Source of the DNA: Mizuhopecten yessoensis
Taxonomy: Eukaryota
Assembly (NCBI RefSeq): GCF_002113885.1
Contig: NW_018407403.1
Coordinates: forward strand, 1,352,055-1,416,054
Direction: 5' to 3'
DNA: 64,000 bases
Part shown: piece by piece, positions 23,553-48,472 of the stretch
Numbering within the stretch: position 1 is the stretch's first letter
Layout: every line of letters starts with the position of its first letter
Made by a program: the position numbers and the translations under genes
Notes under the pieces: model-generated
What the model was told of the DNA's origin: nothing
The model's database searches: none
What the model saw: the letters and a program-made list of their open reading frames with translations, nothing else

Positions 23553-24532
23553 TTCTTGGTTAAATAGGGTCAAGCTATGTAACACCTACCAGTGATTCTA
23601 ATGCAATATTTCAAAGGATTGTTTTACAGGATATTTCCTTTTGTAATAGACTCTATAAGTATACCACAGGGAATAGACCACTTTATTTAAAAAGGATGCG
23701 TCACAAAAGATGACATTCCAATCGTCCCAAAAAATAACTCAATTTATTTGGGTAAACGTACCGCCCAATCAAAACCTTTAAACGACCCATACAATTTCGG
23801 TCCTGGGACGTAAAACATAATCGCAATGTTCATTTTGTATCCTAGCCAAAATAAGTTCAGTTACAACCGCAATTGTCTCAGAAAATCAGAGGCCAGTGTC
23901 ACACTACACTTGTACTGTACCTAGTACAAAATCTGAAGGAAATTTCAAAAGAGAATCTTTATCAATTTTCGACCAATTAGAAGGGTCATGAAGTTTCCAC
24001 GGTAAATGATAAGTGAGGTTCAATCATTACATGTTCAAATAATCAAATAATCAGGAATTGTTTTTCTTTAATTTAGTTCGAGAATTTTTTTGTAGCCCCA
24101 GTGCATAAATTATCGAGAAGAATAACATGTACAACAAACGGTATATGTAATAGGTACCATTCCAGAAGTCACTGAAAATACCTCTATACAATCATAAACG
24201 AAAGGGGGAGGGAGGGGAACCATGGCGTAAACTTAGATTAAGTAGAATAAGAATGCTATTGTTGAAAACACAGAAAAAGCAATACATCTGGTGTACATGA
24301 CACGATAGCTAACATTGAATGTAATTTGGACAATTTAAGAAGATCCCCAAACTGTCCAGTAGCCGCAAAGGACACATCGCGAAAGGCACAGTGCCGCAAT
24401 ACACTGCTACCAGCGTTAAACGAAATAATACAATATCTGAATTTTGACCAATCAGTAGACGCAGTGATATCTTGGCAAGTCTTAACAAGTCCACCAGTAC
24501 TCAGGCGAAACACTATTTTAACCCGACCCTAA

Positions 24533-24615
24533 CCCTTTCACTACTGGAAACCAAAATGGACTCGTCCAGATCAATGCATGGAATATTTAACTTAAGTTAC
24601 ACAGGAGGTAAAGGG
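24533..24615. mobile_element. 83-bp piggyBac-like mini-MITE
   Basis: CTAA|CCCTTTCAC...GGTAAAGGG|TTAA; interior homologous to 9966-10048. Confidence 0.6.
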
Positions 24616-26192: not shown

Positions 26193-26452
26193 GATATTAC
26201 TTTATACCTATAAACAGAGTACATTATCAGCACGTTTTACTGTGTAGCGACAAATGACAGATATTACTTTATACCTATAAACAGAGTACATTATCAGCAC
26301 GTTTTACTGTGTAGCGACAAATGACAGATATTACTTTATACCTATAAACAGAGTACATTATCAGCACGTTTTACTGTGTAGCGACAAATGACAGATATTA
26401 CTTTATACCTATAAACAAAGTACATTATCAGCACGTTTTACTGTGAAGTGAC
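26193..26452. repeat. 67-bp tandem repeat, ~4 near-perfect copies
   Basis: Unit GATATTACTTTATACCTATAAACAGAGTACATTATCAGCACGTTTTACTGTGTAGCGACAAATGACA starting at 26193, 26260, 26327 and 26394. Confidence 0.92.
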
Positions 26453-28786
26453 ATACGAATGACGGTATATTAGGTTCGTCTCTTAAATAACAAACGATGG
26501 TTAATATGACGATATTTTTTTGTATAGTGACAAAAAATCAGAGAGAAAATAATGTCTAAATTACAAAGCAAGAAGACATTCTAGGTTGAGTTCGGTAATT
26601 TAATAAAGATTAATAAAGGTTTAGGGAAACACTGATTTAGAAGGCAATCGGATGTTTTATTTGACGTATCATCATCTATAAAGATGTTTAAAGGATGTTT
26701 TTTTGTTGGATTATATACATATTTGTTCCTGTCACATCACACGACGAGTAACAGTTGTATTACAACTCAGGTGACCGTTAAGGCCCACGGGCTTCTTGCC
26801 TGTCTAATTCCTATAATGAATTTAACTAATTGCAAAACGTAAAGCTCCGAGCAATACTTATTAGAGAGTGAATTCCATTAGTCAAATGTATTTTATTAAG
26901 TCATTTTTGATTTCAAAACTTAACTATTTTTGATACACCCACCAAACATTTATTACCAATCAAAATTATTTGTTGGTTGATTTCTCGTGGAATGGTAAAT
27001 CTCATTAAAAAACGTCACAATTAAAAACTATTATGGAGGGGAAGAGGTGAAAGATAATTGATGTATAAGTTCCTTTATATTCTGTTGGGTAAGACGAAAA
27101 GTTTATTCAACAGGTAAACACAATAGTTGGCTTGCAAAGCATGGGATATACTTAACGACTCTGCATTTATAAGGTTTAATAGAAATACAAATCATTTTAA
27201 AAACTCCTCTTAGGTATTTCAAGGACATCCAGGTAAAGGTTTATTTTTATCGAAACAAGTTTGAAAGAGGCGTGTTTACATTGAATGACTCACAATTCAC
27301 ATAATTTGATTTTTTTCACGTTACGAGTTCCGACATGATTTTTCAATTAATACAAAATTTTTGAAATATCACGGACTGGTATCTGCTTTCAAACGTCTTG
27401 AAAACCCCCCATTATTTTCTGGTAGAAAGCCTTTGCAGCCTATTATTCCACTCCTTTTTGATATTATATCTTTTATATCATAAAGAGGTTCTAAAAATTT
27501 CTATAACTGTATTATTTGCTCTCTTGTCACTGCCTACTAAGACAGAGAATGAAACCACTGGTTAGATACTGATAAGACAAACGAAAACAAATATTTAAAT
27601 AATCTTTTACATTTTAAATTTAAAATATGATGTAACAATGGTTCCATGTTAGAATTATACAACAAATTTTGGTAACAAACACTTTTATTTTAAAAATCAA
27701 AGTGTGTTTATGACGTATTGGCACGGTTCGGAATTGAAATTAACCAGCAATCCTCTAACTTTCGAAATCAATACGGCATGCGGTTTGACGTACATCCCAT
27801 TCTATTTCAACAGTTGTTTTGATCAGTTTCGATTTTGGTCCCTAGCATCACTGATGTGTCGCAGAAGGCAGACACAGCTGTAGGATGCACTGTTCATTTT
27901 TGCATGCTGTATCTATTACAAAATTTTGTTGGATATGTGCTACGTTCATCTTACGTTTGTGCATGTACATCATAATTGTTTGATAACTTCAAGACGATTC
28001 CCCGATATTCTTTTATGGATAAATTATACAATGTAATATTTCAATTAGTTTACGACGAGGTCATTTCCAAACACCATGTTGTACAAGGAAATAGTTAATA
28101 CCTATAGTGAGGTTGTAAAAACAAAAATATGAAGGCTGAATAACGATTTGGTTGCATTCATGGTCGAATCAAGGTAATTCTCAAAATTCCAAGGGTTACG
28201 CGTTTTTACGTTCTTTGCACTCTTGGAAACATCCTCGAAAATTCCTGGGGCTACGCTTTCTTAAGTTCTCTACATCCCTGGTTATGACGTAATCATCGAA
28301 TGTTCTGTAATCGCCAACTTTTAGATTTTACAAGTAGACTGTTTGATCATGTGATGTTCATCAAAAGAATCGTGCGATAGCATATCGGTAAAATTTATCA
28401 GGTATCGTTACTGTGTTATCTTGAAAGGACAGAGCAATTGGTGAGAACTTTTCATAACTGAAACCAATCAAACAGTTAGCTCTGTACATTCATTTTGTCA
28501 TCACATGCATATGTATTTTAGGCATGCAGAGAACTTAAGTGAGCGTAGCGCCTGGAATTTCCAGGAAGGACGAAGAAGAGTGAGCCTCAAGCACATTATA
28601 TATGAACTGCTTCACAATAATTTGACAGTTATTTTGCGCGAGTTATTTAATCACGAAAGCAACCAAATCTATATTCGATTATGTAGTCTCATATGATTCA
28701 CAGATAGAAGTATGAGGCAAATCACTGCGTGACACACAGACATGGATGTAACAAGTATTATATTGTGTTAGTTGCAGCCTTACAAG

Positions 28787-29210
28787 ATGGCCGCCGTTAT
28801 AGTTACAGACGATATCATGCGGTATACTGTGGAGATTGGTGACGTCACCAGAATTGAGGACTGGGTTTATGCTAAGGTAGACCTTTCTAAATGGAGAGAC
28901 ATATCCGGCAACAACTTTTACCATCTCTGCGTCTTGTGCGGGAAGCCATCTGTACTTGAAAAGATTGACCAGACTTTCCCACAGTATCGTTGTCTTGTTA
29001 AACAAGAGAACGGGAATGGAATGACTCCGTTGCTGATGTGTTGCAAATCTGGGCCCTACATCGACTCGGCAACAACGCTGGCTACCATTGATCTCCTGCT
29101 GCGATTAGACGGGCAACCGACGATGCAAACATTCAGCAAATGTATATCAGTTGCCAAGGAACACAACGACATTCGTGTATATTTACGATGGAGGAAGGGA
29201 AGCCCATCCG
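28787..29210 (+). CDS. ROCO gene exon: ankyrin-repeat-like N-terminus
   Basis: DISGNNFYHLCVLCGK and ENGNGMTPLLMCCKSG resemble degenerate ANK G-TPLH motifs; donor G|GTAATT. Confidence 0.65.
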
Positions 29211-32200
29211 GTAATTTTGGTTAAAGCTCCATATCGGTATTGATGTTCACTCATTATAATTATAATTATAAAGTCGAGGTTCCTATATATTGCTTTATCA
29301 CAACCAATACCGTTGATCGTCTCAAGGTAGTTCACAAATTATTATCCGGGGTTCTGGGGCCTTTGCAATTAGCCAATATATTTCTCAACTCCCTGGGGAG
29401 CATACATTTAGGCGTTCAAAGCTATCATTCAACAATTCCAGCACTGCCCAACCACGTACTCATTTGAACAAGAAGATAACACGATCGATATATTTCTTTC
29501 CTGTTGCAGGACTACCCAATTTCATCAAAAAGGAAAATAATGATATCATATTGAAATACATCAACGTTGTGGAGACGGTGGACAAAGGCAAGACAAAACG
29601 CTACCAGAAGTGCATGCTAGAACGGCAAGGAGTGTTTGAGCACATCAGGATATTTTACGTTGGACCAGAAGGAGTAGGCAAGTCTACTCTATGCAGACGT
29701 ATGACAAATCGTTCTACTCAGAATATCAGAAGTACCGATCTGATGGATTCATCAATGAACCGCCTCGCCGTCAATTTAAGAACTTGCCAACGGCGGGAAA
29801 TACATGAAGATACGGCGTACCAGTTATCGATAGAAAAGATCAGGAAGGAAATTCACCATTCCGATCAGAAATTGCACCCTCCAGGTGAGTCATTGTACAA
29901 TGGAGCAGTATTTAATTTCTTCATTCAAAGATAGAACGTTTAATTACAATTGACGCGGATAAAATAGATGATCTCTGTACAAACATGCAAACTAGCCAAA
30001 AAGGACATTTTATTAAATGAGGACATATGTTCAAACACAAACGGAAATAACCTTCAAGCTTTTATTAGAACGAATATGACTAATTTTTATAACGTGCCAT
30101 TTTTAAGTTTTTAGGCACTCTGCAGATGCATACTATCTTATGTGATCAAGAACATTATTTTCTTCAGGAAATGATACTTTAATACAGCATTATTATATAT
30201 GAAGATGGAACCTCAAGCTTATCTGACACATTCTCAGATATATGTGGTGTGTTGAATAAGGAAAGTGAATTAAATTGTCTTTATGTAAATCATGTTACTT
30301 TCATTACCCTATTTTATCATGATAAGGTTGAACATGTTTGTTTCAAAGATAAGGATGTACCATTTTCATGTTCAAATCTCGTTTTGATTTTTTTGTGACA
30401 GTTTTTTAGGTCACCTGAGCTTTGCTCAAGTGACCTATTCTAATTGCTTTCCGTCTGTCGTCGTCCGTCGTCCGTCGTGCGTCGTGCGTCGTCTGTCGTG
30501 CGTCGTGCGTAAACTTTTTACATTTTCAACTTCTTCTCAAGAACCAGTGGATGGATTTTTTTCATACTTGGTCAGATTCATCCTTGGTAGATGAGGCTAC
30601 AAATTTGTAAAATTGGGATTCCAAAGGGAAAATTAACCAATATTTCGAAAATCTTCTTCTCCAGACTCAGAGGTACTACAGTCATTTTCTCTACATGGAA
30701 AGAAAGATCATCAGGGGCTTTACCTAAATTGTAAATTTCAGGAAACCTCAGCCATCCGTTCTACCTTGGGGAGGGGGTAAAGTTTACTATAGTTTATATA
30801 AGGAAATAACACTTTTGGGTATATTTTGACAACTTTTTGTAGGAAATTATTTTTACTTGTTGAGAATTATCCTTGGAGGAAGATGGTTTCAAATTGTAAA
30901 ATTGAGATTCCTACCCCAACCCCTGGGGCAAGGGCGGGGCCCCAAAGGGAAAATTAACCAATATTTCAAAAATCTTCTTCTCCAGACTCAGAGGTACTAC
31001 AGTCATTTTCTCTGCATGGAAAGAAAGATCATCAGGGGCTTTACTTAAATTGTAAATTTCAGGACCCCCCTTACCCCCAGCTATTCGTTCTCCTTTGGGG
31101 AGGGGGGTAAAGTTTACTATAGTTTATATATGAAATTTTTTTCTCCTCCAGACTCCAGTTCTACATTCATTTTCTCTGCATGGAAAGAAAATCATCAGGG
31201 GCTTCTCTTTAAATCGTAAATTTCAGGACCCCCGAGCTATCCGTTCTCCCTTGGGAAGGGGGTAAAGTTTACTATAGTTTATATAGGGAAATAACACTTT
31301 TGGGTATATATATTTTATCTATTTTCAGCAGAAAATTACTCAAACTTAGTCAGAATCATCTTTGGTGAATGAGAGTATTATTTTGTAAAATTTGGATTCC
31401 TGCCCCATCCCCAGGGACTAGGGCGGGGCCCCGAAGGGAACATTTACCAATATTTTCAAATTTTTATCCTTTGATGACATTATATTTCACTTAGTTTACA
31501 TGCTGATTTCCACATCACATCTAAACAATAAAATAAAGCTACCAGTACCTATGATATAACTCAGGTGACCGCTAAGGCCCTTGGGCCTCTTGTTTTATAA
31601 AGTTAACAAAATATGATAAATTTCAAAAGCAAACATGCAACAGAAAAATGTATAAAAAACTAGATACCTATTGTTTGCATGTCTATTGTTTTTAAGTTTT
31701 AAAACATCACCAATTCGGCAGATTTTTAAATATTCCAAACAATACCAACATGGTTGCACTCTATTCCATCTTAAATGATTTTTAACATAATATTTATCGC
31801 TAGAAATGCCATTTTATTGCCACTTTTAACAGTATTACGTTGATGTTTTGCTGTGCTTTGAGCTTTAAAATGTTCAATACTATAAACCTAACATACAACT
31901 TTAGCGGAAACCTTTTTGATTTTTGATCACACAAAAGTTAACAAATAACACAAACAATAATATGTCAATAAGTGCACTGACCCATATTTTGTTCCTGGTT
32001 CAGGAAGAGAAACATATTTTCGATTGATCAACTGAATATTAAATAAGCAGCACTTTTTACATTAATCGTCAAAAATGCAAATTACGGTGAAAAAATATAT
32101 TTAAATAATAAGAGGTAGCGGTAACCTATATTGCCTTTCTGAGATAAGAGTATGAGCTAAAGTCATTTTACTCCCGTAATTTAGAAGAAAATACTTTTTT

Positions 32201-35200
32201 CATAAATTGTGCAAAGGGCCGGTTTCCAAAACGGCCGCTTCTCTGATTCGAATTTCCTGTTGGTGGTGCATTGCCCATGCCGTAGTGGTCACGAATCTAT
32301 AAAGTATAAAGATTTAGGTCACTTGGTTTGTTTTTTATGGCTCCTCAAAGTTGTACCTTTCAGAAGCTGTCTAAGTGTTGATAAAATGTGCATGTTATGT
32401 AAAATATTAATGAAAATCTAATCAAATGATGGTCACCGTAAAGAATACATTCATGGCATGATTGTGACAAAAAATCATGTTTCCATCGCGCCATTTGGCT
32501 GTTTTATGGAAGAAACAATCTCAAAAATGCCATTTTCGATGATAACATTTTAGACACAAAAACTGTGTTTTTTAGAGAATACACCCTTTTATGGGCGTTG
32601 GATGCAAACCAATTTTTATCCTATTAAACAGTACGTAATATGCTATTGATGAGAGGAAAAATCATCAAAATGTAAGTGGTGGAACATTTTCAAATGTTGG
32701 GTTGAATTAGCCTATGGTTGAATTGCCGATTTTCGACTTTCTTTAGATAATTAACAAAAAAACGAGAGTATTTGCTCGGTATGTTGAGAATATGTACACA
32801 GATATGAAAAAAAGTGAGAGAAACACTTTTTCATAAAAAAAATCCAAGATGGCTACTTCACAAGTCCCCGTGGTTGAAGACATTGGCTGACAAATAGACA
32901 GAACAACAAACAAAACGTGTTCCTTATGATTTTGGTTGGTTTTCGCATTTACGGGAGTGTTCATAGCTACGGGCGATTGTATAATACCTATATTTATAAG
33001 TTTGGTTAGTCACATGGTAACGGGGATCTTTCATATCGAGCCCCAAACATACTTTCGACATATGCACTCCGTTGCCGCATGGAAAACTATTTCAAGTTTT
33101 GTCGGAATTTCTTTACCTGTGGTTGTAATGGTCGAGGGTTTTCCAGCGTCCTGTAATACCCAAGGTAGTACAAGATACTGGAGATGTGCGCACACATTCC
33201 CATCGTTCTCTCTCCAACTGGGCACTGGCAGTAGTAGTCCTTTATTGGGGCCTCAACATCGGGTGAAACGGTGAACCGTATCCAAACGTTATATTTCGTT
33301 TGGCTTTTGTGTCGAGAATGTATTTGACATCGGAGAAGGTCTGGGGAGTGCTGGTAAAGCCACACCTCATAGTCTCCGTCATCACTTAAATGTTCGGCGA
33401 TGTAACCAGGAGCCAGAGATATCTGATACGTTCCACACGTAATGGTTCTCAAGTAATCAAGATCGAGACGGGGAAACAGTACGGAAGATGCATCCATCTT
33501 GACAAACTCGGACCTTGCCCGTCTAGATAGATCCGGATCTGTCTTGACTCTCTGAGCTAAACCATTCGGTGTTGTCAAACGGTCCTTCATACGTTCAGCC
33601 ATTAGCCTATCTTTGGCATCTCTCTCTGGAGATCTCTGGTAGATCGGTCCTCTAATACCATTCAGACAGGCTGTGACGGTTCGAAGCAAAGCCTCGATGA
33701 CATTGATAAAGCTGTTAGACACCAATTGCGTTCGGAAGAACGTCCAGTGTTTCAGACGACCATGATAGGATTCCACAATCCACCTCGATTTGGTGATAGT
33801 TCTGTCAAGATTTGCTTGGACGTCAGAATGTTGACTTTGACCGGGTTTCAGGTATGACGGCATGCTAGCATTGAGGCCAGAGGCTTCGAGAACTGGTAGG
33901 ACATCTCTAAAACCTCGGTCAACGACAACGTTGTCGTCTGGTTGTAGCCAAGTAACTAGCTTGTCCATGACTTTTTTTGTAATTGTAGCATCATTTTCGC
34001 TGCCAGTGAATGGTCCTACTGTGTCCAGAATGTAGCCATCTGGTAAGGCGATGCTCATGAATTTGAGATAGTTTCTCTTCTTCTGGCCACAGTAGGACAT
34101 TCTCTGGAGCTTGTGGTCGGAGCTTTTCTGGATATAAATATAGGTGCCATCTAATATGGCAGTGGCTTTATCTCCAAAAAATGCTTCTGAAAAGACAGTA
34201 TTGTGCCCGAGCAACTGTTCTCTTGTCAAGTGATCCGGACCTAGAAATTGTGGGACTATCGATGTGTCTAATGCCTGTACTATGGAGTGGAAAGTTTTGG
34301 ACACACTTGACTTGGAAATTCCAAAAAGAGAAGAACACTGACTCCAGGAAATGTCGGTTTTCAGAGATCTCTGGTAGATCGGTTCTCTCATACCATTTAG
34401 ACAGGTATATATACCAGATGAAAGATATGGGGAACAGAGCGAGTGGATTTCGAGGAACTGATCTTTGGACCAACCTGTCCAGGCCATGCATGCCGAGTCA
34501 TCAAGAGAAGAAAAGCTTATTGTAAACGCAGACTGGTTCTGTGAAAGGACGTGCGACACCTCTAGGAGGTCATTAATGATTTCGGACGATTTTGATGGTA
34601 ACTGAGATTCCAAGGAACCTCTACCATCAAGGACAACCTCTGTAGACGGATCTAAGTCGTTACCAATAAGGTGAATGGAGCAGACGCGGGATGAGGTGGG
34701 ACACCACAGTTTGTGTGAATAGATCAGGTGATGTCTTGCACGTTTTGGTAAGACTGATGATTTTGTTCCATTTCTTGCAAAGGTAACAAGACAGAGACAG
34801 CATTTTTTGTGTGAAGATGATCCATTCAAAAGATCATGAAGGGTCAGCAACGGCAGGATATGGGACGGGGAGTCGTCTTCTTCCTCTATTTCCTGGTTCT
34901 GCTCGGGTTCAGGTTCAGGCTGATTTTTGTTCCGAAGATACTTCATGTAGCACTTCTGGCAAATAAGTGCTTGTTCCTTTGCTGACATCAATCCTTGTTG
35001 CACCAGCGTATCTAGGAGCCATTTATATTGTGGACTATTTACATTGCGTGCACTTCTGTTCTTATTGCCACTACGTTTCTTGAAGTATACTTGACACCCT
35101 TCTCCAACACATTTACCCTCCATCTTGAAACAATAACGATTGGTTTATGAAGCGTCGATAAAGTAACAAAATAGCAAGCCACCGATGATTGCTGTAAACA

Positions 35201-38200
35201 GCTAATACTTAGTAGTTTGGTACAATTATGCGAAAATGTGTGATAAATAACGAACAACTAATTACACAAAATAACAAGACAATATAATAAATCACATTCA
35301 ATACCTCCAAGAAGCGCAGAATTGATTGATTACTTAGAACAAAATAAAGTATTTCATATGGATAATCTATCTATTCGATGTGGCGTGGTCGGCAGGCACA
35401 AAGAAAGTGAGACAAGTCAGGGTCCCAACCCTGACAGAGCCACAACGCTTTGGAGATGGGACAATAAAACAAGGAAAGTGAGACAAGAATAGCTAGCGTC
35501 GAGTCAATGATTCCGTAAACGTATAGACAAAGACAAGAAGATACGGATAAATGTACAAGGCCACACGATCAGAAAATTCAGAAGAGGACAACTTGAGATA
35601 GAACAGTATTCATGTATCAGGGTGTCCTCAGTGTAAATCTTTATATCGATACTGTTTATTTAGTCGTTACACATCATAAAACTGTCATGAAAATATCCGC
35701 TCTGATATTCAATATAAAAGTTTGTATATAATAAGCTATATAATAGGGTTTCAGACAAGGTTGTTACTCATTTCCCCTTTTCTTTCAATTTACAACCACA
35801 TTCAGGCGGCGATATGAGAACGTTCCACCACATGGAATTAGCTGATTTTTGGTACACATATGAAACAAGTAAAGCTCTATCCGATTTTCTGATGGAAATT
35901 TGCATCCAAAACTATATAACGGGAGAAAATTGCAATTTTATGGCATTTTTCTTCATAATTGTGTCTCTGCAAGTGCATTTTCATCCGAGAATTTTTTTTT
36001 ATGTTTTATGAATAAACACGATGTTTTGGAAATATTTATCAAAAGAAATTTATACTATGTTGCGAATTACAATTTCGAGATAACCTTCTTTTATTTACGA
36101 ACTTATGTCTTTGATGCTGAAATTGACAACTTTATAAAAATACATTTTCACTGAAATTATGAAATCTGGGTGTCGGAAAGGTGTAGAATTATTCTTCGGA
36201 AAAGAAAAAAACAGTAGTTGAGCTAGATAAGAAATTATACGGGGGCAGGCTCCTATGGATAATTAACATTACTGGAAACAGGCCCTTTTCTTTTAACTTA
36301 GTTTGTTCTGCATACATACGGCCAAAACAAAATGTTTTGCTCAAACTCTGGAGTAATATTTCGCCTTTTTGCATTAAGTAGGTGTGACCTCACCAACCAC
36401 ATCAAAACCTCCAACAAGACCAAACGACGGTGAACGATTGGACACGTTGTCAAATGAAGGTGAGATCCACTTCTGTTATTTTATATTACTTTGTGACATA
36501 CATCACCTTTATAAATTATTTCTAAAATTCGAAACCTGCAGTATACTATATTAACATTTGAGAACCAACCAGATTGTGGTTGGTTTATATCATAATGAAC
36601 GCAAATGCTGTCAAGTGAAATGGAAATATGTCATGCATATTATTTTGGTATTTGATATGTATGATCACTTTATGAACCAACCAATCTGGTTGGTTGATAT
36701 AATCTTAAACATTTTAAAATTAAGTGTTGGAAGCAGGGCTGTTATTGTCAAGAAAGGGAAAGGTCAGGATCATAAAAACGAAATCGTTACACTTTTCGTT
36801 CAGGGTTATTCATAAGCCGTTCCATTTGGTCATGCTACTAGTACAGCTCGAGGCTGATGAGGAACTGTTTGTAATAAGTTTATGAAGAACGGTTTGTAAT
36901 ACGTTTATGAAGAACTATTTATAATAAGTTTATGAAGAACTGTTTATAATAAGTTTATGAAGAACTGTTTGTAATAAGTTTATGAAGAACTGTTTGTAAT
37001 AAGTTTATGAAGGGATTTCTTGGTATTCATTAGCAATGCATTATTGGTATATTCGAAAGTGAAATTGAAGGACGTGGCAATCTTACATGTCTGTCCATAT
37101 GCTATCTTAATAGATTTAGCTTCACAATCGGATCAAATAAAACCACATGTAGACAACGGTGACCAACAGAACTGCTTTCTCAATGGCAGTTCTTGGGATC
37201 GTTGTTTTGTCATTTCCACTCTTTTACTGACTCTAAACATCGCCACTCGAGTCACATAGCTAAAGCTTGATGAGGACGGCAGACTAGAATATATCATACT
37301 TGTCCACAGCATGTTAAAAGTATTGCCTAAGAGATATAACCCCGCTGATGTTCAACTTTTAAAGTATTATTCTAATTTTTATCTAATTTTTATGATGACT
37401 TTCAAAGGGCTAGTAGGAGCAATCTTATTATTGTTCTAAAACACTCAGACTACCGGTGATGTGGTATTTTTTAATTTTTTTTTATCCAGGAGCTCATTCA
37501 AATGACCGCGTAATGTCAGACAATCTATCTTGTTTCGAGTTTTTTGTTCAATATCATTCATTTTTCCTTATGATTTTCCGTATCAATGTGTTTTTCGATA
37601 GTGAAAGAAAATGATGTTCCAAAGCACACATTAGATCGCCAAAAATCGTCCTTCAAATTCCCTCTTGGTAGTTATGGGCAACAGAGTGAGCGAGAGAAAA
37701 AATTGATTTACAATGCTGCCGAAATCAACTTTGCCGGAGATTTGCAGAAATCGACAGACGAAGAGGCGTACATTTCGCTGTGGGATTTTGCAGGAGAAGA
37801 GGTAAATAATGTCGGCATCAGTTCCGCGCTATCACAAGGAGACAAACACGAACATATTGCAGCCTCCCAAAACACACGCATACACTACACGCATGCATCT
37901 TTCACCATAGCTGTTGAGAGGACGTTAAACAATACTAAACCATACCAAACCAAAGGTAAATAATGTAAGCATAAACCAATGATTCACGAAAGGACCAAGA
38001 AAGATATAACAAAGTTACAAACACATGAGACGTAACCGGATTGGCAACGAAATAATTGTAAAACATTAAGGTAATAGGATTGTGTAACCATTTCTCAATA
38101 CAATGTCTTCAATTTTTTTTAGTTATATTGCTTGGAAGTAAAGAAAAAAAATCTGCCACAAACAAATATGGGTTGTCTGAATTTTAAGGATTTTAAATGG

Positions 38201-41200
38201 AAATTTATGTAAAAAGGAGATAATTTTGAATAAAAAATGAAAGAATTTTTTTTGCAAAATAATGTCAATAAAAATTATACTGACATAGATTAGTATTGCA
38301 TTAATGTATATCAATTTAATAAATGCTGATATTGTGTAAAATTAATTATCTATAAACGATTAAAAATTGCCTTTTTATAATAAAACCATATACACATAGT
38401 AATTGCATGTAAGAGTTATCTTTCTGGGAAATATTCACAATAGTGAAATAGGTAGCCGGTTTCCTGAAGTACAGATAAATGGACACATGTGACTCATTGA
38501 TAAAAAACAACTGAATTAATGCCTGGATTGCTTTGAAATACTTTAATATTGAGAGAACACACTCTTCTGTCAATAATAAACTTACAAAATTCATCAGTTT
38601 AATATTAAATATTAGAATATGCGGATATTGTGATACTGTCTCCCTTCATTGGATTTTCAACTAGGATGTACTTCCTATTTCCGTTTATCAATACATTCAT
38701 ATAACCTTAATTGGAGTCTCACAAAGAAAAATCTTCGATACTCAAGGGATTATGCTTATTTTCGCTCTCGCCTGGAATATGTCATAGCAAAATTGATGGC
38801 ACGCGGCTAGCTTTTTGATTGGTCTCGGGTAAAAACAATGACCAATCGATACATGTTAACTGACACCTGTCCATTGAAGATTACAGAGGAGCGACACCCG
38901 ACTTCAAACCACTCACGTTTACGGTTAAGAGACCAATATACTCCTTTTGATGTACATCAAAGAATCAAACTAGTCTTCTCGTCTCATCCACAAGGTATCG
39001 CACACTGATCGTTCAATCTTGCTGTGACTTAGTCCAGGGGTGCAGAGAGCGAAAGTGAGCGCAACGCCTGGAGTATCGAGGATGAAAAAGGAGGAAAGAA
39101 AAGTTAATGTTTGTATCTAAAACAATGATGTACCAAAAGGTCAGAACATCAGAATAACTGTATCTGTGATTTCATATGAATTACCATCGACGTTGTCTTT
39201 AGAAGTCTAGATTATGAGGTGTCTAGATTATGAGGTGTCTAGATTATGAGGTTGGTCACTTTCTAAATGTATGCATCTCCTATACAACATGTATTGAGCA
39301 TTACAAAGGTCTAGTATAAATGTGACGCCTGTGAATTGAAATTGATTTCCGTTCCTAATTTCACTCTGATTGCTACGCAGTGTAATATATTCATTTCTCT
39401 CATTTCCGTATGTGAAAGATAGAGCTATCTAGGGTAAGAAATGTGTGTAGGAAATGTCCATCTTACACCCCATTCCACGTGACATGACGTCACAATGACT
39501 CAACAATGACGTGACGTCACAAATTTGTAAAAAGCCCGATGCCGCAATGCGGAAAAAGGCGATGTGATGAAATTAAAACCTTTTTCAATATATTTGCCAT
39601 ACTCGGTAGAAAGATAAGATTATTTTTCCCTGTTCGCGCAGAAAAAAATATGGTGTATGCTTAATCTCGCTGACCGATTTTTGTTATAAAAAAAGCTCGG
39701 GGAATTGATATTTTTAAAATGGTACCCATTCCAAACGTATTTTCTTGATTTCTGAGCTGATTCTGGTAGTTGAAATGAGAGAAATAAGACTCTTCCATGC
39801 CCAAGGATGTAGGATAGGGAAATTCCAGCCTCGGGTTTTTCATTCCGCAAAACCATCGCTATATATTCGGGTTTTACCAAATTTGAAAACCCCCTAGTTG
39901 GGATTTCCCTATCCTACACCACTGTGCATGAAAGAGTATTATATTTTTAAATTTTAGAATTGTAACATATGAAAGCTTACACATATATACGTCACTTGAA
40001 TTAATGAGGAGGGCAATCAAAACTAGTGGTGACTTCCTTTTATTTCTTCTATCCTTAACACTAACGAAACGTTAAATGAAAAAGAATATCAAAGTTATCC
40101 CATTTGTGTTCGATGTAGATGACAGTCGGTGATCTTCATGTAAAAGGCAATCTATATTAATAGTATTTCGTTATTAATTTCTAGCTGTACATGAATACAA
40201 ACCACCTATTCCTGACCGGGGACGCTGTGTTTTTACTGCTCTTCAATATTGTTCAATGTATCAACGATTCTCGTCACATAAGTGAGTACTTTTCAATATT
40301 TAGGTATGGTCTTTGAATGTCAAAATCATCCCATATCTTAATATGAAATGTCGAAAACTGGTCACTTTATAATCCTCTCTTCTAAAACATTCTCATGTAA
40401 TGGACGAGCTCGAAAGGTTCCGCATCATTGGGAAGGATCATCCCCACAAATTAATAAATGGATTTCTTGTTTGTTTAGCTGTTGATTTGATGGGATATAA
40501 GTTGCATCATAGTACTATTTGTTGTCCGTATTGAACACTTTTGAGAAAGTTTCTCATCCAAAAGATTAATTTGTTTGTGACTATATTTCGTTGACAGAAC
40601 GACTCCATATGTGGCTGAAATCGATCGACGCATTATCTGAGGATCGTAGCTCACCCACCTTGCAGGCCCCACCCATAGTGCTTATAGGAACACACCTGGA
40701 TCAGCTCCCTGGATCGGTAAAACTACAGAACATGTGTTGTCTTGTTTTCAAACAAAGGAATAGATAGGGTAAAAGGCAAGGTATATGTTTTTGATACATG
40801 TATCTTACAGCCCATATGATACAGCACGTTGTATTACAAATGCTTTTTGCATGGCACGACTCCTTGTAACGCATAGACTATTATCAAAAGAACGGTATTA
40901 TATTTGTACAATATATAAACATTGTATATCATATACTTGCTTTAAATATCGACCAAATTGCATATGTGATACTGTGTCATTCCAATGGTCGCTATTGCCC
41001 GCCCGTGTAATAACTTATCGATATCAGTCCGCATCCGGTGATATCAGCCCGCTTCCGGATATATCAGCCCGCATCCGGGTCTTCAACATAATCCGGTCCG
41101 GTGACCGCTTCACATTTTAGAGGTTTGTTATTGTTGTCGTCTGCACCTCTCGCCTATACTTGAAGTAGATGAACTTATCGACAAAGAAAATGACCAAAGG

Positions 41201-44200
41201 TTGGATTAGGCGATGTTTGTTAACATCAAAAAAGGAAGGACACTGGTAGTTAATGTCGACAGCATGAAAAACGGCAATACGAAGAGGAAAACTATGTGAT
41301 ACAATTTCATAACATGCCTGTTTTTATATCTGACTCCATATTGGCCCTCAACCTATACCAGGCCCGCGGACCTTTCTGCCCTTGGGCCTGATTTATGTAA
41401 CTCGGGCCAATACGGGGCTTGATATGAAAACAGGCATGTAATAACCTCTAAATATGTCGCAATGTTATAACATGATATCATTACTCCACTCAAGATGTCG
41501 TTTTGTCTGGCTTGTTGAGCTGATTCGTCTTTCTGAAAAGAAACAAAAATTGGGGCTTATTGGGAGATAATATTGACCTTTACATATACAAGATGTAAAA
41601 TTACCTATCTTAGCGGCATTGTATATTAGCAAAATTTTAAAAGAACAGAATGGTGATTACTGCTGAATTCTAAATTCAAATACTTATTTTTATACCTGTC
41701 ATACACTTCTGTTGCCGATCTGCAAATATATAATTTCGCAAAATGTCAGAAAATTCACCGCACAATAATTTTGTCCAAGTTTTAATTTCGCGACCTCCTC
41801 TCAATAGTGAGAATTGTGATAATAGACGGATAAAGCTTGGGCGAAATATTCTTGCTTGAAATATCCGTTTATATAGCAAAACAATATCCACGTGACAAAG
41901 AAGTCAGGTTCATGTTGCTCGCAATGAATAGGTCCGAATTGAATATCACAAACACGTTGATGAATTTTCTCTTCTTATCTAGGACTCGGAGAAAACGCTC
42001 CAAGCTGAATCATTCTACTCTGATATCGTGACCAGACATCCCGTTATGGCGGCCATCGCCGAACGTCACATTGTTACGTTCTTCCCATTAGACAACCTGA
42101 AGGATGACAACCCTATGTACGAAATGTTATGGTATGCCATTGTGAAAGCAGCACAACATCAGTCCCATTGGAAATGCCCTGTTCCCATGGTATGGCTTGC
42201 TTTGGAACGAGATATAATGCTGGCTAAAGGCAAGAGGGTGCGGGTCATGACACTGGATGAAGTAATTGAGAAAGTCAAAGGGCTTGAAGTTGAAGTAAAA
42301 GAAGGGGAATTCGGTGTAGAGGAATGTTTAAGGTAGGTGTATTTCTCTATGAATAGGCATCATTTTACAGAATATTGGCTATTCAGTATAAAAATTCCCA
42401 GTCTGGTTGCTATTTGGTTAACTGTGTCATTTTGTTAAAAACTTATGAATTGTATGAAATTGCGTTTGTGCAAATCCAAACATTGTACACAGTACATTTT
42501 AAAAAAAATATTGTGACGTTCTATTTTCACTGGTTCTTTTTTTATCCTGACATTTGGATTGACAGTTTCATTTTATCCATTAAAATTGATATTTTAATAA
42601 CATTGTTCAGATATCTGCACCGGACAGGAATCATACTTTGCTTCGGGACCGACAGTCCGGATAGTAAAATAATAACAGATCCTCAATGGCTTGCTAGGGG
42701 ATTTAGGGCCATCATCACCGCTCGCAATTTCATGCCGGACATTCCAGAACACTCTGAGGTGATGGATCATTATTACAAGACAGGCGAGATAACTCTTGCT
42801 CTGATCAAATTGCTTTGGGGAAAAGAAAAAGAAGATGGCTTCCTACAGCATGAACCCGTGCTTATTGCATACATGGTTCGCCTCGGTCTGCTCACACCAC
42901 CACTCTCTGAAGGAGGAATAGACATCGACGAAGTCTTTTTCGTGCCATCTATCCTCCCTGAAGCTGAACCAGAAAAAATACAGCATCTCATAGAAAATAC
43001 GTACACACAAAGGAGTGCAACGTTGTGCTTTGTTTTTATAAATGTCTTCGTTTCGTCACCAGTTTATGACAAAGTCATGGCATTCTGCATTCACAATTTC
43101 GGCAAAGCTGATTTGACATTCATGGAGCAGGGATACTGTCTCCAAAGAGGTCTTGGATGTTTTCGTCTGAATAGACGAAGAAACATGGTTCTACATTGCC
43201 AGGACTCAATCATCAAACTAACAATGTTCTCTTCAACATCAGATGATGCATTGGAAGCAGGTGAAGGGTTTCACCTGAAAAATGTACTGACAGCGATGTT
43301 AAAAACAGTTCTGGTCACTAATCAGCAGGGACACCTTGTGAAAGAGTTCGACCTTTTTCTAGACAAATCATATCGTGTCACTAACGACGGCAAATACGTG
43401 AGGGAGTCAGACCTCGCACAATCGTCTGAACCGTTGGACTGTTCCGGTCCAGCCAACAGCAAAACTGTCTGCAAGTCCGATTGGGATGTTTGGTTTGTTG
43501 ATCCATCTTTGGTAAGTTGACGTCATATTTTGTATGATATTTTGATAACTAGACATTTTCATGTAGAGCCTTGGGTTAGTTAACCTCTTATTTGCGTATA
43601 AAGCAATGTCAGGGTATAAACCTTAATTATACATAAAACTTTCGCAATTTCAATTAATAAAAATTCGGTAAACAGATTCATGACTACAAAATAGTACATT
43701 TGTAAATGATCAAATGAACTGCCATTTGTAAATACAATTATGATAGGTGAATATCTTATAGTAGAAGAACGGTTCCATTATTGCATACGATATTCTAATA
43801 CTTAGTAGGAGGGCGTCCGACTTTAGGAGATATTCTAATATTCCAAAATTAATTCTTTTAAAGGTTTGCATTCTCTGTTTATGTACCAACATATTTCTCT
43901 ACTATACATCTTCTTTTAATGGATTGTGTCATGGCAAAACCGGAAGGACTATACGCGCCACGTTTCGGTTGCTACGAGTTGAGTAGTGTGGAAACTGTTA
44001 CGAAATCCTGCATACCTGGTTATCCTTCGACACAAGATTAAAAGAATCGCTCGACAGTATTGCAGTGAAATTGACCGGCTTATACATAGTTTACCTGTGT
44101 AGCTCCACTGTGATCTTTAGCTGAGAGATAGCGTTTGGTCAACAATTAATGTCCGGAATCAATCCAATGGTTCACATGTACCGTCATTGATAGTTTTGTT

Positions 44201-45989
44201 ATGAAATATTCCAAGGTTGTGGAGAGGGTTTGTTTATCGAGAACGGAAATCATGGATTTATAAGACACCATATTCTATAATGTCCTTTATATTTTTAGTT
44301 CTGTGCAATCTTTATCAGCCATTCAAATCCTTTTTTCATATTTTGTTGTAGAGAGCTGATGTTATGGAATCAGCAACGGGTGAGTTATAAATTTTGATAT
44401 AAGCCAAATATTTTGCGTCTGTATTGATAGTATGGCTTATAGCGACTGTAAGCCATTTTGTAGGAGCGATGTTGAGAGCTTTAGTATTTATTCAAACATT
44501 TTATGCTATTGTAAAAACTTGCACCCGATGCACTGTAGATGAGATGACTACCATTTTTTATCAGCGATGTTAAGAGCTTATGTATTTATGAATATATATA
44601 TATTACCGAATATTTACTCTAGTGAAGTCATTTTTAACGCTTATCATTTATAAAAAAAAAACAGGAAGCAATAGCGGAAGCTTACGTTGATAAAGAAAAG
44701 TAATAAAACATTTCATCTAAATACAATTTGCATTCATATTACTATCGTCCGTATGATGCGTTTTAGTTTAGACTAAGAAATAGCTTTACAACAGCAATTT
44801 TTATCAAATCTTATTCTTTCATCTTTTACATATTACGAACTTGTCTTTTTTTTAGTAAGCCCTTTCAACACAGTCAAGCGATTTACATCCAAGCAAATGA
44901 GCCGAATTGCAAAATATATTGGCTCAAGTTACTGCCTCCTCTTCACTGAGCTCGGAATGAAACTGCATGAAATGGAACAGGTACGGGAGAGCTACTCCAG
45001 TGAATGCTTCAGAACATTCATTACCCAACTTCTGTGTAAATGGCAGAATGGATTACCTCCCAAGTCGTCCATCCAGAGCATCTACACAGCACTTTCAGCT
45101 AACCATGTAGAAACAAGCCTTCTCTCTACCGAACTGCAGAGTGACATAGCGTCAATGGATCCTTCCGGTAAGAGAGTTTCAGGTGCCCATTGTTAATTAC
45201 GCCCTTCATATTTAAATATGATTTTACAACAAATCTAAAACTTCTTAATACAGTACACAGTTCCCGTCACATTGTTTGAGTCACTAACGTTTTGCTTTAT
45301 ATCACAAAAATTACCATTGCAAATAAGCTTGACATGTTATCACTGACCACTTGATAATGACTATTCTTTCCGTCAGAATTAAGGCAATTCATTATAGATT
45401 TAAATTCAATACAGAATACGGTAATACAGTCTGTAGTATATATTCCAAAAACGACAAAAAATAATAGTCGATTAAGCGATCATAATTTTAAAATTAAGCA
45501 CAGTGTACATATAAGTATGCTTGTAGTTTTAAAAGATATATCAACAAATAAATTCTGTTTGTGTCGCGTTTAAGATAAGAAGCGATAGAAAGGACAAGGC
45601 TTTGGAAGTTATACAGAACGCTTAGTGACTAAGGAGCAGATTGATTCTTCTAAAATAAGATAACACTAGCTTCTAAAAATCCCTGACTTAATTATCATTA
45701 TTATTCCTTAATTTATATTTTAGATGAAGACGCTTGCAGAGTTCCGAATGAGAACGACATAGACTGTATTGCTCTCCGGCTGAACAAGTCATACGTTATT
45801 TTCTTTTTGGAACTTGGTATGGAGATTGCAGAGGTTGATCAAGCAATGCTTGATTGCAAAAATGTGAGACGGGCTTTCACCAAATTATTGAAACAATGGG
45901 TCGATCGATGTGGTCAGACAGCTTCGATGGGTCGGATCTACAAAGCTATGCAGGAATGTGGTATGGAGCATAACTCATTACGAGAATGA
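28787..45989 (+). CDS. Kinase-less ROCO protein (ANK-like, ROC, COR, death domain x2), join(28787-29210,29510-29884,36382-36459,37602-37801,40185-40281,40598-40716,41983-42332,42611-43511,44352-44379,44856-45167,45724-45989), ~1049 aa
   Basis: All junctions are GT-AG and phase-consistent (3150 nt total). G1 GPEGVGKST, G2 RSTD, G3 ISLWDFAGEE, LYMNTNHLFLT, G4 IVLIGTHLD, COR motifs HWKCPVPMVWLALE / YLHRTGII / ITDPQWL / FFVPSILP, and two C-terminal death-fold exons. The 78-nt exon is the least certain. Confidence 0.85.
29510..29884 (+). CDS. ROCO gene exon: ROC P-loop (G1/G2)
   Basis: IRIFYVGPEGVGKSTLCRRM...RSTDLMD; acceptor TTGCAG, donor G|GTGAGT. Confidence 0.85.
30405..31593 (+). mobile_element. 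HINE-like element, full length, in ROCO intron
   Basis: 5' TTTTAGGTCACCTGAGCTTTGCTCAAGTGACC, (CGTCGTG)n, internal tandem units, 3' CTCAGGTGACC plus hairpin GGCCCTTGGGCC TCTTGTT. Confidence 0.8.
32280..36190 (-). mobile_element. DNA transposon (PIF/Harbinger-ISL2EU-like or Kolobok-H-like); ends approximate
   Basis: Transposase ORF flanked by imperfect subterminal inverted motifs (TTGGATGCAAA and GTGGTGGAAC at ~32598-32686 versus GTTCCACCAC and TTTGCATCCAA at ~35822-35909). Exact termini and TSD not resolved. Confidence 0.6.
33087..35123 (-). CDS. DDE_Tnp_4-type transposase with C-terminal SWIM zinc finger (678 aa, intronless)
   Basis: Catalytic ILDGTYIYIQK / VVDRGFRD / SRWIVESYHGRLK; SWIM-like CQCPVGERTMGMCAH; N-terminal Cys/His motifs. 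Confidence 0.88.
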   Translation of the reverse strand: MEGKCVGEGCQVYFKKRSGNKNRSARNVNSPQYKWLLDTLVQQGLMSAKEQALICQKCYMKYLRNKNQPEPEPEQNQEIEEEDDSPSHILPLLTLHDLLNGSSSHKKCCLCLVTFARNGTKSSVLPKRARHHLIYSHKLWCPTSSRVCSIHLIGNDLDPSTEVVLDGRGSLESQLPSKSSEIINDLLEVSHVLSQNQSAFTISFSSLDDSACMAWTGWSKDQFLEIHSLCSPYLSSGIYTCLNGMREPIYQRSLKTDISWSQCSSLFGISKSSVSKTFHSIVQALDTSIVPQFLGPDHLTREQLLGHNTVFSEAFFGDKATAILDGTYIYIQKSSDHKLQRMSYCGQKKRNYLKFMSIALPDGYILDTVGPFTGSENDATITKKVMDKLVTWLQPDDNVVVDRGFRDVLPVLEASGLNASMPSYLKPGQSQHSDVQANLDRTITKSRWIVESYHGRLKHWTFFRTQLVSNSFINVIEALLRTVTACLNGIRGPIYQRSPERDAKDRLMAERMKDRLTTPNGLAQRVKTDPDLSRRARSEFVKMDASSVLFPRLDLDYLRTITCGTYQISLAPGYIAEHLSDDGDYEVWLYQHSPDLLRCQIHSRHKSQTKYNVWIRFTVSPDVEAPIKDYYCQCPVGERTMGMCAHISSILYYLGYYRTLENPRPLQPQVKKFRQNLK
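36862..37011. repeat. 25-bp tandem repeat, ~6 copies
   Basis: Unit GAACTGTTTGTAATAAGTTTATGAA. Confidence 0.9.
37602..37801 (+). CDS. ROCO gene exon: ROC G3 motif
   Basis: AYISLWDFAGEE|GTAAAT. Confidence 0.85.
37813..37953 (+). mobile_element. 5'-truncated SINE with 13-bp TSD
   Basis: Matches the 3' half of the SINE at 7955-8112 (CGGCAT...CCGCGCTATCACAAGGAG...AGCTGTTGAGAGGACGTTAAAC). Flanked by AGGTAAATAATGT at 37800-37812 and 37954-37966. Confidence 0.8.
39205..39252. repeat. 16-bp tandem repeat x3
   Basis: GTCTAGATTATGAGGT x3. Confidence 0.85.
39790..39937. mobile_element. Hairpin end of a non-autonomous palindromic element (similar style to 9795-9918 and 41308-41450)
   Basis: TCTTCCATGC..GATGTAGGATAGGGAAATTCCAGC pairs with GTTGGGATTTCCCTATCCTACACC..GCATGAAAGAG. 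Confidence 0.55.
40185..40716 (+). CDS. ROCO gene exons 40185-40281 and 40598-40716: ROC switch II to G4
   Basis: LYMNTNHLFLTGDAVFLLLFNI... and KRLHMWLKSIDAL...APPIVLIGTHLDQLPGS; not in the ORF track. Confidence 0.85.
41308..41450. mobile_element. Palindromic MITE end
   Basis: ACATGCCTGTTTTTATATC..ATTGGCCC pairs with GGGCCAAT..GATATGAAAACAGGCATGT. Confidence 0.55.
41983..43511 (+). CDS. ROCO gene exons 41983-42332 and 42611-43511: COR domain
   Basis: QHQSHWKCPVPMVWLALERDI, CLR|YLHRTGIILCF, IITDPQWLARGFRAII, FFVPSILP. Confidence 0.88.
44856..45167 (+). CDS. ROCO gene exon: death domain 1
   Basis: FTSKQMSRIAKYIGSSYCLLFTELGMKLHEMEQV...QLLCKWQ...SIQSIYTAL; death-fold pattern (IA..IG...L..ELG...LL.W). 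Confidence 0.75.
45724..45989 (+). CDS. ROCO gene last exon: death domain 2
   Basis: PNENDIDCIALRLNKSYVIFFLELGMEIAEVDQ...KLLKQWVDRCGQTASMGRIYKAMQECGM*. Confidence 0.75.
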
Positions 45990-46511
45990 AATCAGTATGG
46001 ACGATGAACAGTTTGACTGTTTTGAAGACGACGAACAACACAGTAGGACACATGTTCGTCAACGACTTTATAATATGTATCTTAAGTTGTTTTACAAGTA
46101 TAACACACAGCCATTGGCTACGAGTTCTTCTCATATGTCATACATAAATGCAGGATGTGACAACTGTATATGGACATCAATTTTCTTGCTGCTAACACCC
46201 ACCGTTCATACGAATCGCACTATCGTACACACGCATCTGTGTACAATGAAAGAGAGAGAGAGATTTGATATTGAAAGGAAATATTTTCATATATTTTCTG
46301 CATTTTCAATGCGTTGTCCTTGATATATAGAAAAGGAACTTTTACACGAATATACATTATGAAAATATAATCTTGATTCTAATAGAATATGGAAGTGAAT
46401 TGCAGTTTTTTTTCATACCGTAGGTAAGTGTTAAGATCAACTAAAATGAGTATTGATTCCTTTTTATTATGAGATTAAACTTCAGCTGTTTTCACTGCTG
46501 ATATTATAATA

Positions 46512-47626: not shown

Positions 47627-48435
47627 ATGGTGTATGGTGTTGTTTTTGTAATGGTGTTGGCTGTGGCTTTTGCTATTAACGGTCAACAGGATTATAAGTA
47701 TGACACTATTCTATCTGAAGTATCTGCTTTGAAGAAATTCACGTTTAACATGAATGTGGAATTTGGTAGACTCCGACAACAGCATGAAGAAATGCGGGAA
47801 GAGCTTCGAGCTTTCAGGTGAATAGTTACGACACCTGGATTAAAACGTATTTAATTCAGAATATAAAAAATATCTATAGAGATATATATCATACATATAT
47901 ATATATAGCTACATTGTACAACTAGAGTAGAACAATTTTTTGGGGGAAAATGTAAAGCGACTTTGACAATTAATATGCTATGTTTTGTCAATGAATCCAC
48001 CAAATTGCGAGAACATTTCAGTGTTATGACGTCAAATATTGTAATACAATGTAGCTAACAACTTCACATTTTATGCAACTTTGTAACATTGTACTACATC
48101 CGGAGGCACGTTGATCTAGTGGTAGGACGCCAGGCTCTTGCCAAAGGGCTGCGAGTTCGAGTCACGGCACGGAACTGTGTTGTATCTTTGAGCAAGATAC
48201 TTTACTCCGCTTGTTCCAGTCTACTCAGCTGTAAATGAGTATGTGGTTGGGCAGTACTAAATTTGTAGAATGCTAGATGTGAGCGCCGAAATGGCAGCAC
48301 CGGCCGTATGCTCCCGAGGGAGTTGAGACATATATTGGCTGGTTGCAAAGGCCCTATAACCACGGATAATAATTTGTGAAACGCTTTGAGACGACTTACG
48401 AACTAGGTTGTGATAAAGCGGTGTATAAGAACCTC

Positions 48436-48472
<37 letters not shown>

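Follow-up and report, generated by a model that had tools for sequence, protein, structure and literature searches.

What might a ROC-COR GTPase switch in an animal cell when it carries no kinase? The question is raised by LOC110455160, a gene on the + strand of a 64,000-nt stretch of Mizuhopecten yessoensis DNA (the window, from contig C4076 of the assembly, with positions counted from its first letter), where a run of open frames at 28.7-46 kb carries, by open reading frame (ORF) listing and exon-wise Pfam searches, a P-loop together with DxxG and THxD motifs, and includes a long COR-like frame as well as two Death frames. LOC110455160 is an intact, spliced and expressed gene, already present in RefSeq and uncharacterised. 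Its protein reads, from the N terminus, as an ankyrin-like (ANK-like) module, a Ras-like ROC domain, COR and two death domains (DDs), and the reading we favour, to which we give a probability of about 0.55, is that it serves as a death-domain scaffold gated by its GTPase and working in innate immunity or cell death. By analogy, its logic resembles that of an NLR or of a PIDDosome seed, and its layout that of DAPK1 minus the kinase.

An intact and expressed gene without a kinase

Searching with HMMER, using the largest exon (42612-43517) as query, returned XP_021360806.1 / OWF46832.1 (LOC110455160 isoform X2 of Mizuhopecten yessoensis, 1049 aa) at 100% identity, a protein annotated as "uncharacterized" and automatically named "Ser/Thr kinase roco5" in UniProt. 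An exact walk from the ATG at 28787 found a single set of 11 coding exons on the + strand, with GT..AG at every intron, that rebuilds XP_021360806.1 residue for residue and ends at the stop codon 45987-45989 after 3150 nt of uninterrupted frame. The original prediction, made from the letters of the window, had proposed an intact 11-exon frame of about 1049 residues, and was exact to the residue. The two RefSeq isoforms, X1 (1050 aa, with one extra Val) and X2 (1049 aa), are explained by a tandem NAGNAG acceptor at coding exon 3 (36379/36382, aag/tag/GTG), and the extra Val falls in a disordered loop of the ROC domain. The window holds no further tandem paralogues, as tblastn with XP_021360806.1 matched only the gene's own exons.

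The transcript has at least 12 exons, since a non-coding 5' exon (25200-25475, + strand, with its donor GT directly after 25475) is spliced to the acceptor of coding exon 1 at 28772; one RNA contig extends 82 nt past 25200. A 3641-nt contig from sequencing run X1 (depth about 30; the run is probably RNA) comprises 25323-25473, 28770-29209 and 29509-29887 followed by 2671 nt downstream, a remainder that fits the remaining 2351 nt of coding sequence plus about 320 nt of untranslated region (UTR). RNA reads were mapped over 25200-30600, and within that span the 25475-to-28772 junction (GT..AG) is carried by contigs of runs X1 and X2 and by 14 polyA RNA-seq reads of run X24 that begin at 10 different positions, while the 29210-to-29510 junction is carried by the X1 contig and by seven X24 reads. 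Runs X1-X14, from six studies, contain about half of the sampled words of 42028-46100, in agreement with the exon share there. The locus is thus expressed, as spliced RNA contigs and polyA reads.

Could the transcript add a kinase upstream, as an orthologue of DAPK would? It does add an exon, but that exon is closed in all three frames, and the reading frame that would run on into the ATG is interrupted by a stop five codons short of the junction; the upstream exon cannot code, and therefore no kinase exon is added. No long open frame was seen on the + strand in the upstream 18000-28700, and Pfam found neither a kinase nor leucine-rich repeats (LRRs) in XP_021360806.1. The absence of both domains from the predicted protein thus agrees with Pfam and with a transcript whose only upstream exon is non-coding and carries an in-frame stop.

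Seven positions in exons 1-2 (28925-29758) differ from the reference in essentially all X24 reads, five of them non-synonymous (L47V, K72R, L178Q, S222T and N225H) and two synonymous; this is an allelic or strain difference, too small in number for a selection test. Two stretches of the introns behave differently from the gene: RNA depth in 29363-29465 (intron 1) and 30403-30600 (intron 2) is 10 to more than 100 times exon depth, with contig depth in the thousands and a raw-read depth of 40-140 versus 3-10 in exons. Most reads in these spikes continue into sequence unlike the window, with many small internal length variants, and the spikes appear to be dispersed, highly expressed repeat copies that are not part of LOC110455160. 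Rfam gave no match over 24000-47000, so they do not correspond to known RNA families.

A ROC-COR core with a family-wide insertion

The centre of the protein is that of a ROCO. On XP_021360806.1, Pfam scored Roc at 44.5 bits (cut-off 27; match 341-408) and Ras at 33.4 bits, with COR-A at 23.3 bits, below its 35.3 cut-off (match 499-596); searched exon by exon, Pfam had scored ROC and COR weakly, since exon boundaries cut through both domains. AlphaFold2, run with a 97-sequence family alignment, gave a whole-protein model with a mean predicted local distance difference test (pLDDT) of 87.8 and a predicted template modelling score of 0.86, disordered (pLDDT <50) only at residues 266-316. The best Foldseek matches of the model were all ROCO proteins, led by LRRK1 (E 2.7e-15) and the C. 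tepidum RocCOR structure 3dpu (template modelling (TM) score 0.70), followed by LRRK2 and M. barkeri Roco2. VIA-align likewise placed it on LRRK2 (Z 26.9 over 495 residues, root-mean-square deviation (rmsd) 4.1), CtRoco 3dpu (Z 24.8, 457/485) and MbRoco2 (Z 24.6), and the fold alignment to LRRK2 and CtRoco covers ROC, COR-A and COR-B at residues 143-890. Both defining features of the ROCO family are found here, a Ras-like ROC with nucleotide motifs and COR-A plus COR-B directly after it, and the Roc match and the superposition on LRRK1/2 and bacterial Roco uphold the ROC-COR assignment first made from the letters.

The ROC domain is assembled from six + strand exons. Coding exon 2 (29510-29884, residues 142-266) supplies linker helices, β1, the P-loop (G1 GPEGVGKS, 193-200), the switch I Thr217, β2 and the first insertion helix; exon 3 (36382-36459, residues 267-292) the disordered Pro/Ser/Thr-rich part of the insertion; and exon 4 (37602-37801, residues 293-359) the remainder of the insertion, β3 and G3 DFAG (354-357). 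Exon 5 (40185-40281, residues 360-391) encodes the switch II helix and β4, exon 6 (40598-40716, residues 392-431) α3, β5 and G4 GTHLD (422-426), and exon 7 (41983-42332, residues 432-547) the C-terminal stretch of ROC together with the beginning of COR-A. G1, the switch I Thr, G3 and G4 are all in place, and G1, the Thr, DxxG and G[ST]HxD are nearly invariant in 44 relatives. GTP binding by the ROC domain is likely. The rest of COR-A and COR-B lie together in exon 8 (42611-43511, residues 548-848), a signature exon of the family of about 900 nt.

One feature of this domain had no place in the original prediction. In Ras, the P-loop Lys and the G3 Asp stand about 41 residues apart; in LOC110455160 they are 155 residues apart, and across the 44 relatives the median is 170 (range 92-346). 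The difference is made by about 110 extra residues between β2 and β3, common to the whole family, which AlphaFold2 models as a helix (241-263), a disordered Pro/Ser/Thr-rich loop (266-316, from exon 3 and the first part of exon 4) and then another helix (322-335). Small GTPases align to the model at Z 17-18, their 164 aligned residues spanning 307 model residues, in line with the insertion, and none of the solved ROCO structures that we aligned has a counterpart of it.

Two death domains, each on its own exon

After exon 9 (44352-44379, residues 849-857), a 28-nt linker micro-exon on the + strand that tblastn missed and the exact walk placed, the coding sequence closes with exon 10 (44856-45167, residues 858-961, 312 nt, phase 1-1) for death domain 1 and exon 11 (45724-45989, residues 962-1049 plus the stop) for death domain 2. 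Pfam recognises Death in exon 10 alone at 25.7 bits and in exon 11 alone at 29.7 bits (cut-off 22.6), and twice in the whole protein at 50.7 bits. Modelled separately, residues 855-1049 reached a pLDDT of 89.4. In VIA-align, DD2 superposes on the RAIDD/CRADD death domain of the PIDDosome (2of5_A) with Z 15.2 and rmsd 1.2 Å over 87/91 residues, and Foldseek matched it to 2o71 (TM 0.87); DD1 aligns best with the death domains of TNFR1 (Z 12.8, rmsd 1.5), ankyrin-G (Z 12.0), FADD (Z 11.6) and RIPK1 (Z 11.2). Chains of the CARD, DED and PYD classes score Z <=8.3 against the same models. A family profile of the tandem region matches CRADD at 5e-12 with either half, then ankyrin-1, RIPK1, FADD and PIDD.

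On these models and profiles, both C-terminal exons encode true death domains of the DD subfamily, nearest those of RAIDD, TNFR1, ankyrin, FADD and RIPK1, so that the predicted pair survives scrutiny by Pfam, by fold model and by its RAIDD and TNFR1 matches. The two are 30% identical to each other (E 8e-9) and each is encoded by its own exon; because the pair is common to at least 18 relatives from the protein search, the tandem is an old internal duplication. No solved tandem death-fold protein matches both domains at once: the 2CARD of RIG-I/MDA5 and the tandem DED of caspase-8 align to one DD, at Z ~7.

A short ankyrin-like N terminus

Coding exon 1 (28772-29210, + strand, with its ATG at 28787) covers residues 1-141, where about four helix pairs make up a degenerate ankyrin-like module. 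In the AlphaFold2 model, residues 1-140 form the pairs 8-28, 44-63, 81-107 and 113-138, with a period of 32-37 residues; Pfam scores Ank_4 at 22.9 bits on exon 1 alone (cut-off 22.7) and 18.2 bits on the whole protein. The ten best language-model neighbours of residues 1-180 are, without exception, ankyrin clusters (at 0.94), and paralogues have canonical ANK repeats at the aligned N-terminal position. With helix pairs, neighbours and paralogue alignment in agreement, the label "ankyrin-like" is fair for what is a short, degenerate module of about four repeats.

An expanded bivalve family with shuffled flanks

Searched with the 301-residue COR exon, the scallop genome gives 66 matching places; almost all are open as one frame of about 300 codons, and a stop interrupts just one match. 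Some of the places are grouped locally, with five on C1340, four on C4076 and three on C5302, and the nearest paralogue, LOC110455149, is 51% identical in the COR exon and lies about 670 kb away on C4076. Against a library of 1.84 billion proteins, the exon matches 233 clusters (50% identity) at E <=1e-3 and 97 at <=1e-10. All 20 relatives that we looked up are from bivalves (Mizuhopecten, Pecten, Argopecten, Ylistrum, Mercenaria, Potamilus and Sinanodonta), and all 20 are called "uncharacterized" or bear automatic kinase names. The expectation of a lineage-expanded, uncharacterised bivalve family is therefore borne out, by the 66 COR-exon places and by relatives in Pectinidae, Mercenaria, Potamilus and Sinanodonta.

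What surrounds the ROC-COR core varies widely. In two Pfam censuses covering 81 relatives (44 and 37), each listing its 25 commonest families, Roc was found in 72 and COR-A in 74 (41/44 and 33/37), Death in 33, HEPN_DZIP3 in 13, ankyrin in about nine, SH2 in five and TIR in three. Single or few relatives add CARD, caspase, Macro, WWE, OTU, MIB_HERC2, EH, EF-hand, Ig, NHL, VWA or PARP14-like RRM/KH domains, in architectures such as caspase-ROC-COR-DD, SH2x2-ROC-COR-DD, PARP14-RRM/KH-ROC-COR-DD and HEPN-Ig-ROC-COR-Macro. Neither a kinase nor LRRs appear among the 25 commonest families listed for each census, which leaves room for rare exceptions.

The family also stands apart from other ROCO proteins. 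Against the family profile, the LRRK1-like proteins of scallops reach E ~5e-15, far short of the scores of family members, and a word-based protein search with residues 180-850 returned the protein itself and one weak match. A search with the family alignment brought in other ROCO classes (protist LRR-ROCO, Dictyostelium roco6 and LRRK1/2) and no wider taxon sampling. Judged from sequence, this is a distinct, expanded clade of kinase-less ROCO proteins whose flanks are shuffled among modules of the immunity and cell-death type, and a divergent one, because sequence similarity to LRRK2 is marginal (E 1.4e-5).

A proposed mechanism

How might such a protein work? ROCO proteins undergo nucleotide-dependent conformational change and COR-mediated dimerisation. 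The ROC-COR core of LOC110455160 would on that basis act as a nucleotide-dependent conformational or dimerisation switch, with input arriving through the ankyrin-like module, the disordered loop of the ROC insertion, or both, by partner binding or modification. ROC-COR would gate access to the tandem death domains, which the active state would expose or cluster, and these might then seed a helical death-domain assembly with adaptors of the FADD, CRADD or MyD88/IRAK kind, the output being caspase activation or NF-kB-type signalling. A complex prediction with two copies of COR-B (residues 650-850) scored 0.00, with the fold of the chain itself uncertain without an alignment, and speaks neither for nor against dimerisation.

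Extended to the whole family, the same logic suggests a bolder picture, which is possible but which we are inclined to doubt: that bivalves built an NLR-like repertoire of at least 60 genes on ROC-COR, with a lineage-specific insertion of variable length between the switch regions, in place of NACHT or NB-ARC. Variable binding modules (ankyrin, SH2, Ig, NHL, PARP14-like RRM/KH and WWE) would then be coupled to variable effectors (tandem DD, CARD, caspase, TIR and HEPN). In LOC110455160 the trigger might be the ankyrin-like module or modification of the disordered ROC loop, and the GTP-driven change would free a pre-paired tandem DD to seed a caspase or NF-kB signalosome.

Several points weigh against our reading of LOC110455160 as a gated scaffold of immunity or cell death. 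The mechanism is drawn from ROCO, DAPK1 and death-fold biology, and the gene itself is known here from sequence, RNA and models. A ligand-sensing role is weakly founded, because the ankyrin-like module is short and degenerate. Glu follows DFAG, in contrast to the Gln of Ras, so the catalytic rate is not predictable. Expression is modest, one polyA run reaching a depth of 3-10 and another about 0-1, and the junctions of exons 3-11 are supported by the RefSeq model, by homology and by contig-length arithmetic, not by mapped reads. Death domains, finally, also have non-immune roles, as in ankyrins, UNC5 and DAPK1. Taken as a whole, the original picture of a receptor keeps every structural claim that it made; its sensor has shrunk to a degenerate four-repeat ankyrin-like module, and a receptor or signalosome function is a plausible inference by analogy.

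Receptor-like switch or downstream adaptor?

The main rival to a receptor-like role is that LOC110455160 detects nothing itself and is a downstream adaptor, recruited by death-domain receptors or adaptors (TNFR-, TLR/MyD88- or UNC5-like), in which ROC-COR times or limits signalling as GTP does in DAPK1. The N terminus speaks for it, with about four degenerate ankyrin-like repeats and no recognisable ligand-binding repeat array, as do death domains whose nearest counterparts are those of the adaptors CRADD, FADD and RIPK1, and the fusion of ROC-COR to MyD88-like and TLR-like proteins in Aplysia (PMC9334734). The wider family pulls the other way, however: relatives put SH2, Ig, NHL, PARP14-like RRM/KH, WWE and EF-hand domains before the same ROC-COR core, as is typical of sensor diversification, and at least 60 genes would be unusual for a pure adaptor. 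We regard the adaptor as unlikely, though it deserves to be taken seriously.

Distinctly less probable is a kinase-less scaffold derived from DAPK1 with a non-immune role in cytoskeleton, autophagy or trafficking, perhaps regulating full-length DAPK1 as s-DAPK-1 does. The order ANK-ROC-COR-DD is indeed that of DAPK1 after its kinase and calmodulin (CaM) region (PMC4917528), and the family profile retrieved an insect ANK-Roc-Death protein, P0181. Yet the similarity to P0181 is confined to about 90 ROC residues (E 6e-7), LOC110455160 has two death domains and no Ser-rich tail, and its family of at least 60 members takes effector partners (caspase, TIR, HEPN and CARD) that DAPK1 is not known to have.

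That the gene is a young, drifting paralogue, a transcribed pseudogene-in-waiting of a birth-and-death family, we consider very improbable and reject. In its favour, non-synonymous changes make up five of the seven exon 1-2 variants of one RNA run, the ankyrin-like module has degenerated relative to that of paralogues, and identity in the COR exon is only about 51% with the nearest relatives found. Against it, seven variants are too few for a test, the 3150-nt, 11-exon frame is unbroken with canonical splice sites, every GTPase motif is conserved, as are the cores of the death domains, the AlphaFold2 model has very high confidence everywhere but in one loop, and the transcripts are spliced and polyadenylated.

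What would a GTPase-gated death-domain scaffold mean? All four ROCO genes of humans are disease genes, and the way in which the GTPase controls the output of their proteins is still debated. To our knowledge, all of the well-studied animal ROCO proteins except MFHAS1 signal through a kinase; the scallop family joins the ROC-COR switch directly to death-fold, TIR, HEPN and caspase modules. If our reading is right, animals would have come twice to a design in which an NTPase switch links a sensor to a death-fold effector, once with STAND ATPases (NLRs and Apaf-1) and once with ROC-COR, and the family would be a simple system, free of kinases, in which to study how ROC-COR passes its nucleotide state to an effector domain. 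Bivalve immunology and aquaculture gain a large, unstudied family for the candidate repertoire of intracellular defence and cell death.

The surrounding window

Intron 2 of LOC110455160 (29885-36381) harbours an intact ORF of 678 aa on the - strand (33087-35123) for a transposase of the PIF/Harbinger type, with DDE_Tnp_4 (1.9e-17) and HTH_Tnp_4 by Pfam and, at its C terminus, a SWIM-like finger. Elsewhere in the genome there are 39 or more further full-length copies, about 99% identical, among 670 first-look candidates; from these copies, the element looks like a very young DNA transposon family and is probably still active. Upstream of the coding exons are several repeat arrays: a 47-bp satellite of about 80 copies at 13866-17686 (3.8 kb), which coincides with strong GC and AT skew; 42-bp (13 copies, 92% matches) and 158-bp arrays at 11773-12312 and 10485-11012, respectively; and a 67-bp array (26193-26453, 3.9 copies, 98% matches) inside the 5' UTR intron.

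Downstream, the + strand carries frames at 47627-47818, 50822-51451 and 60982-61356. Two of these are collagen triple-helix frames (Pfam Collagen 4.8e-27 and 1e-6), and the frame at 47627 resembles a signal peptide followed by a coiled coil; the three frames (47627-61356) probably belong to one or two genes for secreted collagen-like proteins. At the edge of the window, a 782-aa frame on the - strand (61615-63960) matches RVT_1 (9e-33) and, weakly, zf-RVT, and is probably a copy of a non-LTR retrotransposon.

Comparison with known systems

Which known system does LOC110455160 resemble most? In the order of its modules the answer is DAPK1, in which a kinase/CaM region is followed by ankyrin repeats, ROC, COR and a C-terminal death domain, and in which GTP binding regulates output within the same molecule (PMC4917528). 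LOC110455160 shares the order of the non-catalytic modules, ANK-ROC-COR-DD, with this cell-death-linked protein. It differs in lacking both the kinase and the Ca2+/calmodulin segment, in having about four degenerate ankyrin-like repeats rather than ten, in ending with two death domains and no Ser-rich tail where DAPK1 has one death domain plus that tail, and in belonging to a family of at least 60 genes, whereas DAPK1 is single-copy. The large β2-β3 insertion in ROC probably also sets it apart; the insect ANK-Roc-Death protein P0181, our proxy for a DAPK-like protein, is 30% identical over 89 residues of ROC (E 6e-7).

In fold, the closest systems are LRRK1/LRRK2, CtRoco and MbRoco2, whose ROC-COR-A-COR-B superposes on that of LOC110455160. 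The G4 motif of LRRK2 is also GTHLD. Sequence similarity to LRRK2 is nevertheless marginal, and LOC110455160 has no LRRs, kinase or WD40; its ROC has about 110-170 residues extra, absent from the aligned small GTPases. The PIDDosome enters through the C terminus, where DD2 superposes on the RAIDD death domain at 1.2 Å.

The comparison with NLR/STAND receptors is one of layout. A variable N-terminal module, a central NTPase switch and a death-fold effector are arranged alike in both, and lineage expansion and shuffling with TIR, CARD, caspase and HEPN add to the likeness. The switch itself is different: it is a Ras-like ROC with COR, not a NACHT or NB-ARC ATPase, and the best matches, whether by fold or by sequence, are all to ROCO proteins and small GTPases, not to a STAND core. 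The sensor-switch-effector analogy therefore holds for the layout, with the shuffled domains of relatives as indirect support, but fails for the central NTPase and does not amount to membership.

The notion of ROC-COR as a switch in immunity has precedents. ROC-COR is reported fused to TLR/MyD88-like proteins (with TIR or Death) in Aplysia, in a survey of the mollusc immunome (PMC9334734). Brown algae have LRR-ROCO proteins that are candidate immune receptors (PMC11378527), and ROC-COR ("AP-GTPase") as an NTPase of apoptosis and immunity is an established idea, with AP-GTPase conflict systems reported from bacteria (PMC8195603, PMC7159879). The Aplysia, brown-alga and bacterial fusions resemble the scallop family in their immune-type modules and in an immune switch proposed from sequence alone; in the brown-alga and bacterial proteins described there, the variable part is LRRs, unlike that of the scallop family. 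As far as we read them, these four papers describe neither ANK-like-ROC-COR-DD-DD, nor the shared ROC insertion, nor a scallop expansion of at least 60 genes, and we found no published description of the three in the full-text literature, the coverage of which leaves out most subscription journals. The locus had been put forward as an undescribed system. Within that literature, this stands for its architecture, its insertion and its expansion, and not for the gene, already a RefSeq model, nor for the fusion of ROC-COR with TIR or Death or the idea of an immune NTPase, which are published. LOC110455160 is neither a DAPK1 nor an NLR/STAND protein; it belongs to the ROCO family.

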